From Hyalangium minutum (GTDB lineage Bacteria > Myxococcota > Myxococcia > Myxococcales > Myxococcaceae): a stretch of 64,000 nucleotides of DNA. The translations under genes and the position numbers were made by a program. Of the stretch, positions 4,441-63,559 are shown piece by piece; positions within the stretch are counted from its first letter, which is position 1; every line of letters begins with the position of its first letter. The DNA lies in assembly GCF_000737315.1 (NCBI RefSeq), contig NZ_JMCB01000013.1:248001-312000 (forward strand), in the 5' to 3' direction. Under the pieces are notes generated by a model. The model saw only the letters and a list, made by a program, of their open reading frames with translations. It searched no databases and was not told the DNA's origin.

Positions 4441-5870
4441 GCGAGCCCGCGCCCAAGGCCCCTGTGATGGCCGATCCGCTGGTGGAGCACCCGCTCATCG
4501 AGGGGCGCTACTCGAACGCGGAGCTCAACGCATCGCTGATGCGGCCCGTGCTGGCCGGACCGGCGCGCTGGTGGTGGGTGCTGGTGGGGATCTGCTCCGC
4601 GCTCACCGTGCTGCTGATGGTGGGCATGGGAGTGACGTTCGCGAAGGGCGTGGGGACCTGGGGCAACAACATCCCGGTGGCCTGGGCTTTCGGCATCATC
4701 AACTTCGTCTGGTGGATCGGCATCGGCCACGCCGGCACGCTCATCTCCGCCATCCTGCTGCTGTTCGCCGAGAAGTGGCGCAGCTCCGTCAACCGCATGG
4801 CCGAGGCGATGACGCTGTTCGCCGTGGCGTGCGCGGGCCTCTTCCCGCTGCTGCACCTGGGGCGCCCGTGGAAGTTCTACTGGCTGGTGCCGTACCCAAG
4901 CGTGCTGCGCGCCTGGCCGCAGTTCCGCTCCCCGCTCACGTGGGACATCGTGGCGATCCTCACGTACCTCACGGTGTCGGTGCTCTTCTGGTACGTGGGC
5001 TTGCTGCCGGATCTGGCGTCCGCGCGGGATACCGCCCGGGAGACGTGGAAGCGCCGCGCCTGGGGAGTGCTGTCCATGGGATGGCGCGGCAGCGCCCGGC
5101 ACTGGCTCCAGTGGCGCGCCGCGTACGTGGTGCTCGCGGGAGTGGCCACGCCGCTCGTCGTGTCGGTGCACACCATCGTGTCCTTCGACTTCGCGGTGGC
5201 GCAACTGCCGGGCTGGCACACCACCGTTTTCCCTCCGTACTTCGTGGCGGGCGCCATCTTCTCCGGGCTCGCCATGGTGCTCACGCTGCTGTTGCCCGCG
5301 CGGCGGGCGCTGGGCCTGCACCACGTCATCACGAATGCGCACCTGGATGTGCTCTCGCGGCTGATGCTCGTGTCCGGGCTCTTCGTGGCCTACGGCTACG
5401 TGCAGGAGCATTTCTTCGGCTGGTACAGCGGCAACGAGTACGAGCAGCACGCGATGAACATCCTGCGCGTGGGCCCATACGCGCCGCTCTTCTGGACGGT
5501 CATCTTCTGCAACGTGGTGGTGCCACAGCTGTTCTGGATCGGGCGGCTGCGCATCCAGCCGGTGGTGCTCTGGGTGGCCGCGCTGCTGGTGAACGTGGGC
5601 ATGTGGCTGGAGCGCTTCCTGATCGTGGTGGCGCCTCTGAGCGAGGACTTCCTGCCGAGCAGCTGGAAGCACTACGCGCCTACCTGGGTGGACCTGAGCC
5701 TGCTGTCCGGGACGATGGGGCTGTTCGGCCTGGGCTTCCTGCTGTTCCTCAAGCTGGTGCCGCCGGTGCCGGCCAGCGAGGTGAAGCACCTGCAGCATGA
5801 GCTGGAGTCCTCCGAGGCCTTCGCGCGCGAGGCGGCGGCTCAGAGGCGGAGCGGGGGAGGGGCACCATGA
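4437..5870 (+). CDS. actC: ACIII subunit ActC (NrfD/polysulfide reductase-type quinol-binding membrane subunit)
   Basis: WWIGIGHAGTLISAIL, HLGRPW, SVHTIVSFDF, PPYFVAGAIFSG motifs; ATGA overlap with actB. Confidence 0.93.
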   Translation: MSEPAPKAPVMADPLVEHPLIEGRYSNAELNASLMRPVLAGPARWWWVLVGICSALTVLLMVGMGVTFAKGVGTWGNNIPVAWAFGIINFVWWIGIGHAGTLISAILLLFAEKWRSSVNRMAEAMTLFAVACAGLFPLLHLGRPWKFYWLVPYPSVLRAWPQFRSPLTWDIVAILTYLTVSVLFWYVGLLPDLASARDTARETWKRRAWGVLSMGWRGSARHWLQWRAAYVVLAGVATPLVVSVHTIVSFDFAVAQLPGWHTTVFPPYFVAGAIFSGLAMVLTLLLPARRALGLHHVITNAHLDVLSRLMLVSGLFVAYGYVQEHFFGWYSGNEYEQHAMNILRVGPYAPLFWTVIFCNVVVPQLFWIGRLRIQPVVLWVAALLVNVGMWLERFLIVVAPLSEDFLPSSWKHYAPTWVDLSLLSGTMGLFGLGFLLFLKLVPPVPASEVKHLQHELESSEAFAREAAAQRRSGGGAP

Positions 5871-60023: not shown

Positions 60024-60857
60024 TCAGGAGATGCCCTTGCGCAGCCGCTCCCAGTCGAAGTTGGCGGACGGATCGCTCTTGCGGCCCTTGGGCACTGCCA
60101 CGTCCTTGTGGCCGACGATGTTGCCCATCGGCACGTTGTACTGCTGCTTCAGGTAGCCGGTGAGCTGGGTGAGCGACTTCATCTGTGCCTCGGTGTAGGG
60201 CGTCTTGCCGCCGCCGTCATTGACGATCTCGATGCCGATGGAGCGGCCGTTCACGTCAGTGGGCACGCCGTGCAGCTCGCCCTTGCCCGCGTGCCAGGCG
60301 CGCTTCTGGTCGTTCACCAACTGATAGATCTTGCCGTCGCGGTCCACCATGTAATGGGCGGAGACCTCGGCCTTGGGGTCGCGCATGTGGGCCAGGTCCG
60401 CCGCGCCGTTGTTGGAGGCGGTGTGGTGCAGGACGATCGTGTCGATGTCCGCGCCCTTGCGATCATCGAAGTTGGGTGACGGCGAGTTGACGACGGGGGG
60501 CTTCTGGAACACGCCCGGCTTTGTCTCGGGCTTGGTGGGAGCAGTCGGCCCGCTCAGCTTGGCCAGATCCTTCTTCAGTGCGGCCTGGGTCAGGTCCCCG
60601 TAGAAGCCGGTGGACGGCAGCTTGTGGTCCGCCTGGTACTTCTTGAGTGCTGCCTCCGTCTTGGGCCCGAAGGTGCCCGCGCCCGCGCCCACCTGCGCCG
60701 CCGTCATGTACTTCAGCGCCACCAGCGCGTCCTGAAGCTGCTTCACCTTGGGGCCCGTGTCTCCTTCCTTCAGGCCCGCAGGCGGAGCGGTGAGCGCGGT
60801 GCTGGCAGCGGCGGGAGCACGGGTGGCCGTGGCGGTGGTGCGGTTGATCGTCGTCAT
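60024..60857 (-). CDS. N-acetylmuramoyl-L-alanine amidase (AmpD/Amidase_2) with N-terminal peptidoglycan-binding domain
   Basis: VKQLQDAL...FGPKTEAALKKYQ; VLHHTA, SAHY, AWHAG, SIGIE, GHKDV...KSDP. Confidence 0.93.
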   Translation of the reverse strand: MTTINRTTATATRAPAAASTALTAPPAGLKEGDTGPKVKQLQDALVALKYMTAAQVGAGAGTFGPKTEAALKKYQADHKLPSTGFYGDLTQAALKKDLAKLSGPTAPTKPETKPGVFQKPPVVNSPSPNFDDRKGADIDTIVLHHTASNNGAADLAHMRDPKAEVSAHYMVDRDGKIYQLVNDQKRAWHAGKGELHGVPTDVNGRSIGIEIVNDGGGKTPYTEAQMKSLTQLTGYLKQQYNVPMGNIVGHKDVAVPKGRKSDPSANFDWERLRKGIS

Positions 60858-61009
60858 GGGAGCGTTTCCAGGCAGCGAGGTTGCCGGCTTCTATTCACGG
60901 CGGATTATTACAGGCGGACAGCTCCTGGTAAACAAGGAATCCAGAAGAGTCTTCCAGTATTCCCATTTTCGCCTAAATTGCGCGTCTCTCTTTTTCCGGA
61001 GGTCTCTGC

Positions 61010-61381
61010 ATGCGTCTGTTGGCTCTCGTGGGACTTGTGGGGCTGTTGAGCGGCTGTGGCGTGGGAGTGGAGGAGGAGGCCGCCGCGCCGGCTTCCGAGC
61101 GGACCGAGATGGGCCCGCCGGAGTCGTGGTGCCGCAGCTACACCTCGGCCCAGTACTGCCCGAAGTACATCTGTTACTGGACCGGCACCGCCTGCACGCT
61201 GCCTCCCGCGTCCGTGTCCGGGACTCCTGAGGAGACGACCCAGATGGGCCCGCCGGAGTCGTGGTGCCGCAGCTACACCACGCAGCGGTACTGCCCCTCC
61301 GTGTGCGCCTGGTACAGCTATCCCGCGCCCGGGTACTGCGGCCTGAAGGCCTCGTCGCTGACGGGCGAGCAGCAGCAGTAA
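61010..61381 (+). CDS. Small lipoprotein with two Cys-rich repeats
   Basis: Lipobox LLSGC; GGAGG RBS; two MGPPESWCRSYT-x4-CP-x2/3-C-x-W...C modules. Confidence 0.8.
   Translation: MRLLALVGLVGLLSGCGVGVEEEAAAPASERTEMGPPESWCRSYTSAQYCPKYICYWTGTACTLPPASVSGTPEETTQMGPPESWCRSYTTQRYCPSVCAWYSYPAPGYCGLKASSLTGEQQQ
61107..61279. repeat. 38-bp perfect direct repeat, 135 bp apart (coding duplication)
   Basis: agatgggcccgccggagtcgtggtgccgcagctacacc at 61107-61144 and 61242-61279. Confidence 0.95.
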
Positions 61382-61457
61382 GTCCTCGGGTTCACCGCGC
61401 AGTGAGCACCGCGTCCGCTCCGGCTTGGCTGGAGCGGACGTTTGCTTTTGGGGGCTC

Positions 61458-61486
61458 TTGCCAGCGCGACTCGGCGCGGTTAACCA
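61458..61486 (+). promoter_or_regulatory. Candidate sigma70-type promoter
   Basis: TTGCCA-17 bp-TAACCA; predicted +1 falls on the A of ATG at 61493. The -10 match is imperfect. Confidence 0.5.
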
Positions 61487-61492
61487 TGAGGC

Positions 61493-61570
61493 ATGCGTCT
61501 CGTGGTGTGTGCTCGTCGATTTAGCCGCCCCCCGGCCCCGTTTGGGCGTCGGGAGGCCGTGCTGCCGTAG
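61493..61570 (+). CDS. Putative leaderless leader peptide MRLVVCARRFSRPPAPFGRREAVLP
   Basis: ATG at 61493, TAG at 61568-61570; its last codons overlap one arm of the leader switch helix. Confidence 0.55.
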   Translation: MRLVVCARRFSRPPAPFGRREAVLP

Positions 61571-61678
61571 CGCGCACTCCTCTCGGTAGCGGATCGCCTC
61601 GCTGGCGTGATGCTCGCCCGGACTCGCTGGGGGGGCATTCGAGCTCTTGTCCGTTCCGCTCCCATTCCTGCCGAGAGG
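61524..61678 (+). promoter_or_regulatory. Structured 5' leader with alternative anti-SD/SD pairing (translational attenuator candidate)
   Basis: GCTGCCG(61561-67):CGGTAGC(61584-90) competes with CCTCTCGGTAG(61579-89):CTGCCGAGAGG(61668-78), which covers the RBS; additional hairpins present. Confidence 0.65.
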
Positions 61679-61684
61679 TTTCCC

Positions 61685-62833
61685 ATGTCCGTTGCCATTC
61701 TGAGCGCCGAGGAAGTCCGGCGCGCGCTGTCCGTCCGCGATCTCACCAACCCTGCTGCTGGCCCCCACGCGATGCAGCGCCTCATCGAGGGCGCGCTCGA
61801 GGCCCTGCGCCTCGCCTGGGGCTGCGAAGTTCGTGTCCACCGCCAGAGCCCCATCGTCTCCATCGTCAGCAACTACGATCACCTGCACTACCCACCCGAT
61901 GGCGCCGCGCGGGATGCCCGCTACACGCGCTACGTCTGCGACACCGCGCTGCTGCGCACACAGACCTCGGCGATGATTCCTGGGCTGCTGCGGCGGCTGG
62001 CCGAGGCTCCTCCCGAGGACGTGCTGCTGGCCTGTCCCGGGCTCGTGTACCGGCGTGACTGCATCGACCGGCTCCACACCGGCGAGCCGCACCAGATGGA
62101 TCTGTGGCGCGTCCGCCGAGGCGCCACACTGGGAACTGCGGAGCTTCGCGAGATGATCGAGATCGTGGTCCGCGCCTTGTTGCCGGGACGGGAGCTGCGC
62201 GTAGCGCCAGCGCGGCACCCGTACACGACCGATGGCCTGCAGATCGATGTCCGCGACGGCGCGCAGTGGGTGGAGATCGGCGAGTGCGGTCTGGCACTGC
62301 CCGCGCTGCTGGAGGAGAGCGGACTGGAGCCTGGGCGCACCACGGGCCTCGCGATGGGGATCGGGCTCGATCGCATCCTGATGCTGCGAAAGGGGCTGGA
62401 TGACATCCGCCTGTTGCGCTCGGCGGATCCGCGGATCGCGTCGCAGTTACTCGATCTGGAGCCATACGTCCCCGTGTCCTCGATGCCCGCGGTGCGGCGT
62501 GACTTGTCGCTGGCGCTCGCCGAGGAGGACACGCCCGAGGAACTGGGCGACGCGGTCCGGGCGGCGCTCGGAGACAGGGCGGAGTTGGTGGAGAGCGTGG
62601 AGGTGCTCTCGGAGACGCCGTACCGGGCGCTGCCTCCGGCGGCGGTGGCGCGGATGGGCATCGCGCCTGGACAGAAGAACGTGCTGCTCCGCGTGGTGCT
62701 GCGCGCGTTGGATCGCACGTTGACCCACGAGGAATGCAACGCACTGCGGGATGCCATCTACGCGGCGCTGCATCGGGGCTCCGCGTGGGAGTGGGCGGCG
62801 CGGCCTGTTGAGCGCCCCATACGCTCGCCCTGA
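61685..62833 (+). CDS. PheS-related class II ligase with C-terminal FDX-ACB domain (recalled as the 'SrmL mystery ligase' family)
   Basis: LLRTQTSA, motif 2 PGLVYRRDCIDRLH..PHQMD, motif 3 AMGIGLDRILM...DDIRLL; FDX-ACB RRDLSL...DRTLTHEE; ATG at 61685 after GAGAGG. Confidence 0.85.
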   Translation: MSVAILSAEEVRRALSVRDLTNPAAGPHAMQRLIEGALEALRLAWGCEVRVHRQSPIVSIVSNYDHLHYPPDGAARDARYTRYVCDTALLRTQTSAMIPGLLRRLAEAPPEDVLLACPGLVYRRDCIDRLHTGEPHQMDLWRVRRGATLGTAELREMIEIVVRALLPGRELRVAPARHPYTTDGLQIDVRDGAQWVEIGECGLALPALLEESGLEPGRTTGLAMGIGLDRILMLRKGLDDIRLLRSADPRIASQLLDLEPYVPVSSMPAVRRDLSLALAEEDTPEELGDAVRAALGDRAELVESVEVLSETPYRALPPAAVARMGIAPGQKNVLLRVVLRALDRTLTHEECNALRDAIYAALHRGSAWEWAARPVERPIRSP

Positions 62834-62905: not shown

Positions 62906-63559
62906 ATGCTCTTCCGAGACAAAACGCCCCCATCGCGTTCGGAGATCATCGCCGAGGCGGATCGCGCGCGCTCCAAAGGCCGGCTGAAGAAGGCCATCAC
63001 CGGGTACCGCAAGGCGCTGGAGCTGGAGCCCAAGGATCCGGTGGTGCTCGGGAAGCTGGCGCCGTTGCTGGCGAGGACGAAGGAGCATGAGGCCTCGCTG
63101 CAGAGCTTCCGGGCAGCGGCGCAGGGGCATTTGGATAAGGGCTTCGCGGACAAGGCGCTGGCCGTCTACGCGCAGGCCGCGGAGGAGTTCCCGCACCAGT
63201 TGAACCTCTGGCAGCAGATGGCGCAGTTGAACATGTCGAAGGGACACCGGGCCGAGGCGGTGAAGACGCTGCTGCGGGGCCGGCTCCACTTCCGCCGCAA
63301 GACCGAGCGCCGGGGCGCCATCACCCTGCTGCAGGAGGTGCTGGCGCTCGAGCCGACGCTGTTCGAGGTGAAGCTGGATCTGGGGCTGCAGCTCGCCCGC
63401 GAGAAGCACGTGGCCGAGGCGATGACCTTGCTCAACCCGATGGTGCTGGACGCCAAGACGCGCCCTCAGTTGCGCCGGCTGCGGTGGACGCTGGCACTTG
63501 CGTCTCCGAGCGTCGCGGCGTGGGGTCGCTGGGTGCGCGCCGTGGTGCTGGGCCGCTGA
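62906..63559 (+). CDS. Tetratricopeptide repeat protein
   Basis: KAITGYRKALELEPKD and further TPR-like helix pairs; ATG at 62906. Confidence 0.82.
   Translation: MLFRDKTPPSRSEIIAEADRARSKGRLKKAITGYRKALELEPKDPVVLGKLAPLLARTKEHEASLQSFRAAAQGHLDKGFADKALAVYAQAAEEFPHQLNLWQQMAQLNMSKGHRAEAVKTLLRGRLHFRRKTERRGAITLLQEVLALEPTLFEVKLDLGLQLAREKHVAEAMTLLNPMVLDAKTRPQLRRLRWTLALASPSVAAWGRWVRAVVLGR

Follow-up and report, generated by a model that had tools for sequence, protein, structure and literature searches.

Upstream of srmL, a gene for a PheS-related ligase in the myxobacterium Hyalangium minutum, lies a 25-codon upstream open reading frame (uORF) that is, judged from its conservation, a real regulatory ORF kept across at least four phyla. 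We studied it in a 64,000-nucleotide stretch of the genome (contig NZ_JMCB01000013.1, positions 248,001 to 312,000 of the forward strand), here called the window, in whose coordinates positions are given. Our assessment is that, with a somewhat better than even chance, the uORF encodes the leader peptide of a ribosome-mediated attenuator that turns srmL on when Phe-tRNA(Phe) runs out. SrmL itself is, by its domains and composition, a monomeric, mitochondrial-type paralog of phenylalanyl-tRNA synthetase (PheRS) that lacks phenylalanine, and these features suggest that it is most likely an emergency or auxiliary enzyme for charging tRNA-Phe.

The srmL gene occupies 61685 to 62833 on the forward strand, as do all leader features described here, and encodes 382 amino acids. 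The product matches NCBIfam model NF051887, "PheS-related mystery ligase SrmL," at 520.7 bits (cutoff, 300) over positions 1 to 349 of 349. Its Pfam domains are the PheS-type class II core (tRNA-synt_2d) and a C-terminal FDX-ACB anticodon-binding domain, an arrangement on one chain that is also that of human mitochondrial PheRS (FARS2, PDB 3CMQ). Like FARS2 and bacterial PheS, SrmL keeps the motif 2 and motif 3 arginines, and it retains the specificity Ala and Thr. Unlike them, it scores below the equivalog cutoffs (114.8 bits versus 258 for mitochondrial PheRS, TIGR00469; 114.1 versus 237 for PheS, TIGR00468), has replaced residues in the pocket, and has lost every Phe. The PheS residues FPFT, GFAFG, HTS, and QxE are HPYT, GLAMG, QTS, and QxD in SrmL, with former Phe positions now occupied by His, Tyr, Leu, and Met.

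The absence of Phe came to light during a codon usage check, in which srmL had no Phe codon at any of 20 representative loci. A scan for srmL in one genome per species yielded 59 loci, from Myxococcota, Longimicrobium (Gemmatimonadota), Lentzea, Nocardia, other Actinomycetota, an alphaproteobacterial metagenome-assembled genome (MAG), low-GC MAGs, and Pseudomonas; with plasmid copies included, 62 srmL loci (individual loci carry L numbers) were examined in all. We found no Phe in SrmL at 56 of the 59 genomic loci. The exceptions are a Longimicrobium copy with one Phe (L033) and two distant Pseudomonas homologs with three and one (L056 and L058). Among 120 database homologs, 112 have no Phe and eight have a single one. 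For P0071, P0086, P0095, and P0111, that Phe falls at position 18 or 23 in an extended form, probably within a mis-called N-terminal extension; for the remaining four it is at position 2, 316, 359, or 384. Phe thus makes up 0.02% of residues family-wide, compared with 3.6% in the other window genes, a frequency at which the probability of finding none in 382 residues is 7e-7. Genes neighboring srmL have a normal Phe content, including those in genomes of 39 to 50% GC. Since srmL is Phe free and, at the surveyed loci, monocistronic, the transcription unit has no conserved Phe codon other than the one in the leader. No tRNA gene that might serve as a dedicated substrate was found within about 3 kb of srmL in the 59 loci.

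Three side observations concern the protein. The longest mechanical srmL ORF opens at GTG 61607 (408 amino acids), and long forms also occur among database entries (407 amino acids, single Phe at position 18). The SD and the ATG at 61685 are invariant, and for this reason the long form appears to indicate a mis-called start that overlaps the leader structure. The two Pseudomonas proteins are SrmL-like at 37 to 38% identity, have AT-rich upstream regions without an R-F leader, and are possibly a separate subfamily under different control. In the Longimicrobium copy with a single Phe, the 3' end of the uORF also differs (ending GVGTVRARL before the stop); this locus may be an example of relaxed constraint.

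The uORF runs from 61493 to 61570 and would encode MRLVVCARRFSRPPAPFGRREAVLP. Its codons are ATG CGT CTC GTG GTG TGT GCT CGT CGA TTT AGC CGC CCC CCG GCC CCG TTT GGG CGT CGG GAG GCC GTG CTG CCG TAG. Both Phe codons are TTT, which accounts for 4.7% of Phe codons in 22 likely window genes, and one Arg codon is CGA, which accounts for 5.0% of Arg codons in the same genes. The rare codons meet at CGA TTT (Arg9-Phe10; 61517 to 61522, with TTT at 61520 to 61522), the putative sensor. An initial annotation of this DNA had described the uORF, a predicted TTGCCA-17-TAACCA promoter, a GCTGCCG arm in a 61561:61590 helix, an anti-SD, and the TTT and CGA codons, and we found all of them where it had placed them.

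An ORF of this length is trivial in DNA of 70% GC, and it is by its conservation that the uORF stands beyond chance. We found a short in-frame ORF upstream of srmL in about 55 of the 62 loci, in Myxococcota, Gemmatimonadota, Actinomycetota, low-GC MAGs, and two plasmids, and its peptides share R-F-x-x-P; the initial annotation had named conservation of the peptide upstream of homologs as a check, and it was borne out. Among 26 aligned myxobacterial leaders, the uORF ATG is invariant and the frame is open in every one. Two blocks, CGTCGATTTAGC(C/A)GCCCCCCG and GGGAGGCCGTG, show no nucleotide change among these leaders, even at wobble positions, and the sequence upstream of the −35 box cannot be aligned. 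Of 17 lineages, 16 have their nearest upstream ATG in the reading frame of the conserved Phe codon; the chance of this, calculated by hand as 35/3^17 under the assumption of independent lineages, is 3e-7.

The conserved core consists of CGA-TTT (Arg-Phe), found in nearly all lineages, and a C-run 6 nucleotides (nt) later. Written as CGATTY-N5-CCCC, it occurs once in the 64-kb window, where 0.05 occurrences are expected. In 52 of the 62 loci there is a single copy, located upstream of srmL and sharing its strand, and about 0.4 Mb of sequence yielded just 2 stray matches; the core is thus tied to srmL. The proposal in the initial annotation that the uORF, an RNA switch, and the ligase form one undescribed system holds up. 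CGA is kept even in the low-GC loci L035, L041, and L042. Where the core is changed, Phe stays: L049, L052, and L054 have TTC, and AGA, CAG, or CGC occurs as the preceding codon. Three Lentzea species have TTC in place of TTT, L059 has AGA in place of CGA, and the difference between MTRRF and MTRF in Lentzea is one whole codon, a 3-nt indel. The ATG frame, the substitutions that keep Phe, and the whole-codon indel argue for selection on a translated frame and not on RNA alone.

Beyond R-F-x-x-P, which is common to all, the peptides differ widely across phyla and range from 15 to 30 amino acids. A Myxococcota example begins MRLVVCARRFSRPP, and the Kofleriaceae peptide is MRASRRFTGPRIQLGSGAAD. 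In Longimicrobium the peptide begins MRITAANSRRFTRPP (in full, MRITAANSRRFTRPPTLSGAWEVCARG); in Lentzea it begins MTRRFSHPRP (in full, MTRRFSHPRPAAVARA or MTRFSHPRPAAVARA); and in the alphaproteobacterial MAG it begins MKTQMIYYSLRFICPL. Further examples are MITMHLTAKRFSNPGLLPSGVPVMS in L041, MKTQMIYYSLRFICPLCLV in L042, MIHRILYLSGARFTNPLSQLAFRGHSATS in L035, and the starts MGRSTRDARRFSRPRP in L043 and MIDSVSITRTQRFGRPGWW in L045. The Pro codon is CCC in every case and belongs to an arm that pairs in the RNA; what follows it is variable (P, R, G, L, S, or W).

These comparisons narrow what the uORF could sense. The initial annotation had attached significance to both Phe codons and to an RPP motif. 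The second Phe codon (61541) is not conserved, being Thr in Archangium and Ser in L019. Conservation of the RPP or PP motif is confined to Myxococcota and Longimicrobium, and its conserved Pro is the CCC of the pairing arm. As the signal, that annotation had offered amino acid limitation, antibiotics, or proline stalling dependent on elongation factor P (EF-P). One Phe codon is universal and SrmL is Phe free, and from these options the signal can be narrowed to Phe-tRNA(Phe). As far as the alignments go, the leader has an arrangement characteristic of attenuation leaders: a short ORF, 5' of a PheS homolog, in which a single Phe codon is universally conserved. Several tandem regulatory codons, another such characteristic, are not present, since one Phe codon is conserved.

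Database scans found no known leader family. A scan of three leader peptides against NCBIfam at E<=10 returned no family, and an Rfam scan of 60800 to 62000 on both strands at E<=10 returned no match, including no T-box, Phe leader, or riboswitch. A T-box-like GGTGGAACGCC in Myxococcus leaders was considered and dropped; it is not conserved in the window and has no Rfam support.

The leader fills the intergenic interval from 61450 to 61684, between the terminator of the upstream gene and the srmL start. We found a −35-like hexamer, TTGCCA (61458 to 61463), and, after a 17-nt spacer, a −10-like hexamer, TAACCA (61481 to 61486), which ends 6 nt before the uORF ATG. The TTG(C) of the −35 box and the GTTA of the −10 box are conserved in all 26 aligned myxobacterial leaders. 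A consensus promoter scanner made no call at TTGCCA-17-TAACCA, since the −10 box lacks the final T. In at least 12 lineages, the −10-like box of the best promoter-like match ends 5 to 8 nt before the uORF start. The clearest case is L042, where TTGACT-16-TATAAT-7-ATG matches 11 of 12 consensus positions and was called by the tool. Others are TTGAGC-17-TATCCT-7 in L025 and L026, CTGACA-18-TAACCT-6/7 in Lentzea, TACCCT-7 in L043, and TAGAAT-7 in a Glutamicibacter plasmid copy. No Shine-Dalgarno (SD) sequence precedes the uORF. L041 appears to be leadered, as does Longimicrobium, where TATATT lies about 31 nt upstream. The leaderless start put forward in the initial annotation thus gains conserved boxes and an analogous geometry in other lineages, and we grade it as probable only: the window uORF is probably leaderless, with the mRNA starting at or beside the AUG.

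Downstream of the sensor codons the leader carries a series of complementary segments. Region 1 is a C-run, GCCGCCCCCCGGCCCC (61524 to 61539), which begins 1 to 6 nt past the Phe codon and falls within the footprint of a ribosome paused at TTT. Region 2, also within the uORF, consists of GGGCG (61544 to 61548) and an SD-like decoy, GGGAGG (61551 to 61556). The anti-SD, CCTCTCGG (61579 to 61586), starts 8 nt past the uORF stop, and a small hairpin, CGCC-loop-GGCG (61595 to 61607), is present in every predicted fold and invariant in the alignment. Regions 3 and 4 form a predicted local hairpin, GATGCTC-G-CCCGG/CTGGG-G-GGGCATT (61609 to 61639), that holds CGCCC (61615 to 61619) and a G-run, CTGGGGGGGC (61627 to 61636). 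The srmL SD region, CCGAGAGG, is at 61671 to 61678.

Three pairings recur among the leaders: C-run with G-run, anti-SD with SD, and, within Myxococcota, a nested stem. C-run:G-run complementarity is present in every lineage, and a leader's own pairs have a mean energy of −25.1 kcal/mol, versus −21.0 kcal/mol for permuted pairs (standard deviation, 0.74; p<5e-5). The flanks of the two runs vary in step: Myxococcaceae have CCGG/CCGG, Archangium has CCGAGCCCC/GGGGUUCGG, Lentzea and Longimicrobium have CGACC/GGUCG, L035 has UUGA/UCAA, L038 and L046 have CUGCC/GGCAG, and L059 and L040 have GGAU/AUCC. RNAalifold likewise pairs the C-run with the G-run, including a GC-to-AU compensation.

The initial annotation also held that an anti-SD just past the uORF stop sequesters the srmL SD, and the complementarity on which this depends proved general. 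Anti-SD and SD are perfect 8-bp complements in the window, and they are complementary in 20 of 20 representative leaders with differing sequences, as in the sequestered SDs of the ermC and cat type; own pairs average −20.9, versus −17.7 for permuted pairs (p<5e-5). The anti-SD/SD sets include CCUCUCGG/CCGAGAGG, GUUCUCUCCGG/CCGGAGAGAAC, CUUCCCGU/ACGGGAAA, and CGCCUCGCAG/CUGCGAGGCA, and in most leaders the anti-SD begins 3 to 15 nt past the uORF stop. The GAGAG of the srmL SD and the start context CCATGTC are invariant in the 26 myxobacterial leaders. A second, 5'-proximal anti-SD may complicate the ON state: UCUCG in uORF codons 2 and 3 (61498 to 61502) can pair with CGAGA of the SD (61673 to 61677) in forced folds, and the Archangium equivalent, UUCUC, pairs with GAGAG in the minimum free energy (MFE) fold.

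Within the nested stem, GGGNG:CNCCC (in the window, GGGCG 61544 to 61548 with CGCCC 61615 to 61619) shows two compensatory pairs in 24 cells and is 98.5% paired, and the decoy GGGAGG (61551 to 61556) is 92.9% paired with CCTCTC (61579 to 61584). By RNAalifold and pair counting, the Myxococcota stem as a whole is 92.7% paired, versus 51 to 71% when the partner columns are slid. The helices 1:2, 2:3, and 3:4 are predicted to overlap and exclude one another, with region 1 under the stalled ribosome, as in an attenuator. The initial annotation had assigned the switch to a different helix, between GCTGCCG (61561 to 61567), which covers the last sense codons, and CGGTAGC (61584 to 61590). We abandoned that helix: it has 7 bp in the window and only its outer 4 bp beyond the Hyalangium group, shows no compensatory change, is 73.8% paired, and is 2 to 3 kcal/mol worse than the decoy pairing. 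Two further candidates were set aside after inspection by eye, a local 1:2 hairpin that is strong in Myxococcaceae and weak in most Archangium leaders and a pairing of CGAUUU with GGAUCG (61591 to 61596) that is possible in the window and lost in Myxococcus.

What follows the G-run differs among lineages. In Longimicrobium the run closes a terminator (GCCCCCCGGATGCGGTCCGGGGGGC and then TTTTT), which the tool called in L029 between the uORF and srmL. L036, L041, L042, L044, L059, and L060, the last being an Azotobacter plasmid copy, likewise have a U-tract after the G-run. In L042 there is no local 5' arm, and the uORF C-run is the sole partner for the G-run before the U-tract; therefore, a ribosome on the C-run must give read-through there. 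The window has CATTCGAG and no U-tract after the G-run, and no terminator was called between the uORF and srmL. The window output would thus be sequestration of the SD.

We propose that sensing rests on CGA-UUU as a slow codon pair. While awaiting Phe-tRNA(Phe) at UUU, with its P site on CGA, a ribosome would cover the C-run and leave the G-rich region 2 free. Region 2 would then pair with CGCCC (61615 to 61619) and the anti-SD (61579 to 61584), so that the G-run would be unpaired and the srmL SD open, the ON state; in the relatives with a U-tract, the terminator arm would be sequestered as well. With no stalled ribosome, because the uORF is either not translated or translated to its stop, the C-run would take region 2 or the G-run, the hairpin 61609 to 61639 would form, and the anti-SD would pair with the SD, giving the OFF state. 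SrmL, whose gene has no Phe codons, could be made exactly when Phe-tRNA(Phe) is missing. A:I decoding is inefficient in E. coli, and CGA, an inosine-read codon, would be slow; in the P site it should prolong the wait at the wobble-read UUU. CGA-containing pairs are among the inhibitory codon pairs described in yeast (bioRxiv 10.1101/755652).

The initial annotation had already supposed that stalling turns the ligase on and that running to the stop turns it off. We favor this polarity, with moderate confidence, because a Phe-free enzyme implies synthesis without Phe-tRNA(Phe). Masked MFE folds of the full-length leader were tried as a test of polarity and rejected; they gave no SD flip in the window or in Longimicrobium and the opposite result in Lentzea, and this is why our confidence is only moderate. 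Polarity was instead judged from folds of truncated transcripts and from forced-pair energies. Transcripts truncated just before the G-run form the 1:2 fold without a ribosome, leaving region 3 free, and form the 2:3 fold with a ribosome at the Phe codon (L029, L036, L041, L044, L059, L006, and L047). By forced-pair energies, the window leader without a ribosome favors OFF (−93.4) over ON (−81.9) by 11.5 kcal/mol, and the difference shrinks to about 3 to 4 kcal/mol (OFF, −72 to −73; ON, −69.1) once a ribosome is placed at the Phe codon.

Several points weigh against this reading. The ON fold is never the MFE fold in the window leader, and because it is never the equilibrium minimum, the ON state would need kinetic, cotranscriptional trapping. 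At equilibrium, the full-length window leader keeps anti-SD and SD paired in all three ribosome states, and the Lentzea folds open the SD with a ribosome at the stop and not at Phe. Lacking a U-tract, the window has no transcriptional component. A covariation test of anti-SD:SD within the myxobacterial alignment was negative. The register of this pairing differs between Myxococcaceae and Archangium, which explains the negative test, and the significance of the pairing was taken from the cross-lineage permutation test in its place. The nucleotide invariance of CGATTTAGC could reflect an RNA contact and not decoding speed. Known Phe attenuators use five to seven Phe codons. With the SrmL Phe pocket altered (FPF to HPY), Phe is not assured as its substrate. 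Finally, modeling indicates that one regulatory codon gives hyperbolic and not hypersensitive control (PMC1183508); this would suit an emergency response and would speak against a finely tuned attenuator.

The polarity could also be reversed. A ribosome translating the uORF to its stop would then open the anti-SD, the freed C-run would capture the G-run, and srmL would be on; a stall at CGA-UUU or a lack of translation would leave the SD closed, and SrmL would be made only when Phe-tRNA is plentiful. The Lentzea masked fold does behave in this way, opening the SD only with a ribosome at the stop and forming the C-run:G-run helix. The anti-SD lies in or near the footprint of the terminating ribosome in most lineages, and the conserved nested stem (C-run:G-run, GGGNG:CNCCC, and decoy:anti-SD) leaves the SD unpaired. 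We nevertheless regard reversed polarity as unlikely: it gives no reason for a Phe-free enzyme of 340 to 390 amino acids in several phyla, the C-run:G-run helix is the terminator stem where a U-tract follows, so that in L042 a free C-run means OFF, and the truncated-transcript folds favor the classical order.

A different signal would be expected if the uORF encoded a nascent-chain arrest peptide, in which R-F-x-x-P or RPP causes stalling in response to an antibiotic, a small molecule, or EF-P, not Phe-tRNA. Such peptides are known from the ermC and cat leaders, TnaC, and the RAPP peptides. The spacing of R, F, and P is fixed across phyla, PP occurs in Myxococcota and Longimicrobium, and actinobacterial plasmids carry srmL copies next to cmx, erm(X), and tet genes. 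However, the Phe of Lentzea is codon 4 or 5 (MTRF or MTRRF), where a chain of 3 to 4 amino acids is too short for sensing in the tunnel. The residues that precede R-F lack conservation, the Pro is always the CCC of the pairing arm and is followed by a variable residue, and the plasmid neighborhoods are generic mobile or resistance islands. The Phe-free enzyme would also go unexplained, and we consider an arrest peptide quite unlikely.

The remodeled pocket (FPF to HPY and QxE to QxD) allows another view of the enzyme itself, to which we assign a low probability: SrmL would load tRNA-Phe with a residue other than Phe (e.g., the near-cognate Tyr), giving a regulated, reversible recoding of Phe codons under starvation or PheRS attack. 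Ribosomes would then read through Phe codons, and SrmL, being Phe free, would be affected neither by the shortage nor by its own activity. In a milder version, SrmL may be a mobile resistance determinant against natural soil inhibitors of PheRS or Phe analogues.

We also weighed a translation-independent RNA element (a riboswitch, a leader that binds tRNA-Phe, or an operator to which SrmL binds), with the ORF incidental. E. coli thrS provides the model for autoregulation of the last kind. The invariance of CGTCGATTTAGC(C/A)GCCCCCCG and GGGAGGCCGTG down to wobble positions, the extensive conserved secondary structure, and SrmL's anticodon-binding domain would all fit such an element. Yet the in-frame start codon is kept in 16 of 17 lineages, the promoter boxes place the AUG at the mRNA 5' end, the TTT/TTC and CGA/AGA changes preserve the amino acids, indels between relatives are multiples of 3, and Rfam gave no match, T-box included. 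An RNA element of this sort is, in our view, very improbable. That the peptide is a substrate or partner of the ligase (in the manner of a ribosomally synthesized and posttranslationally modified peptide, or by peptide aminoacylation) has next to no probability, and the idea was rejected on conservation grounds: a short ORF does always adjoin a ligase of unassigned function, but only R-F is conserved, plus a Pro dictated by RNA pairing, the length varies from 15 to 30 amino acids, the ORF overlaps the RNA switch elements, srmL is monocistronic, and no other maturation or export genes are conserved nearby.

The attenuator that we favor has well-known counterparts, the trp attenuators among them. 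The E. coli pheST operon (pheM leader) and pheA (pheL leader) are controlled by ribosome-mediated transcription attenuation that senses Phe-tRNA(Phe). Like them, srmL is preceded by a short leader ORF with a Phe codon (pheST being the PheRS genes themselves); its leader has mutually exclusive helices, relatives have an intrinsic terminator before the structural gene, and the proposed stall gives read-through. Unlike them, the srmL leader has one conserved Phe codon in place of five to seven, with a rare CGA before it, its output in the window would be SD sequestration without a U-tract, and its ORF is probably leaderless. At least four phyla share the element, which matches no Rfam leader family, and the gene that it precedes is a Phe-free monomeric paralog, not the housekeeping PheST. 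The srmL leader also differs from classical attenuators in the extra complementarity between region 1 and region 4 and in having a terminator as its output in some phyla and SD sequestration in others.

A second, non-housekeeping aminoacyl-tRNA synthetase (aaRS) under leader control also has a counterpart. We know of no report that trpRS1 of Streptomyces coelicolor encodes an enzyme free of its cognate amino acid. Vecchione and Sello are said to have described in 2010 (J Bacteriol) how trpRS1, which encodes an auxiliary, indolmycin-resistant tryptophanyl-tRNA synthetase, is induced through an attenuator with a Trp-codon leader. As we propose for srmL, the control of trpRS1 by its leader peptide responds to depletion of the cognate charged tRNA; SrmL differs in amino acid and enzyme class. 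In ermC and cat translational attenuation, stalling depends on the drug and the peptide. The srmL SD is likewise sequestered upstream, and a stalled leader ribosome is proposed to re-pair the leader and expose it, but the conserved feature of the srmL leader is a codon pair, and the composition of the enzyme points to tRNA charging. A 2022 review of aaRS duplications (PMC9437257) lists TrpRS1 as a duplicate resistant to indolmycin, and the term "PheRS" does not occur in it. In the searchable literature we found nothing relevant on SrmL, "mystery ligase," Phe-free PheRS, or bacterial mitochondrial-like PheRS paralogs, and the functional assignment suggested here for SrmL appears to be unpublished there.

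The genes around the srmL locus in the window offer few clues. Upstream, at 61010 to 61381 (forward strand), is a lipoprotein-like ORF with a signal peptide and Cys and two internal Cys-rich repeats (MGPPESWCRSYT..YCP), for which we found no match in Pfam or NCBIfam. It is followed by a very strong intrinsic terminator (stem 61411 to 61441 plus a T-run), which is the left boundary of the leader. The locus is flanked by a cell wall amidase (Amidase_2/PG_binding_1) at 60024 to 60857 on the reverse strand and by a TPR-repeat protein at 62906 to 63559 on the forward strand. A functional link of these two neighbors to srmL is unlikely, because the surveyed srmL loci share no conserved same-strand partner.

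Outside the window, the leader and srmL travel together. We found a complete leader-plus-srmL unit on Azotobacter chroococcum plasmid NZ_CP066311.1 (L060, 4830 to 6101), between IS630, IS3, and HNH genes, and another on Glutamicibacter nicotianae pGnB68 (L061, 4840 to 6101), beside the chloramphenicol efflux gene cmx. Corynebacterium diphtheriae plasmid OV884290.1 carries a 3' fragment of srmL (L062, about 5001 to 5642) flanked by erm(X) and tet(65). This distribution shows that the leader-plus-srmL module moves horizontally. Plasmid carriage is compatible with a protective or resistance role and does not demonstrate one.

Taken together, a Phe-free enzyme and a leader whose one conserved feature is a Phe codon suggest that SrmL is made when the charging of tRNA-Phe fails, and they provide a concrete proposal for the function of what NCBI calls a "mystery ligase." If this is true, the srmL leader would be a compact form of attenuation that relies on a single codon within a slow codon pair, and the element would have been retained while its output shifted between transcription termination and SD sequestration. 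Should SrmL be a PheRS insensitive to inhibitors, it would bear on PheRS as an antibiotic target; should it charge a residue other than Phe, it would bear on regulated mistranslation.

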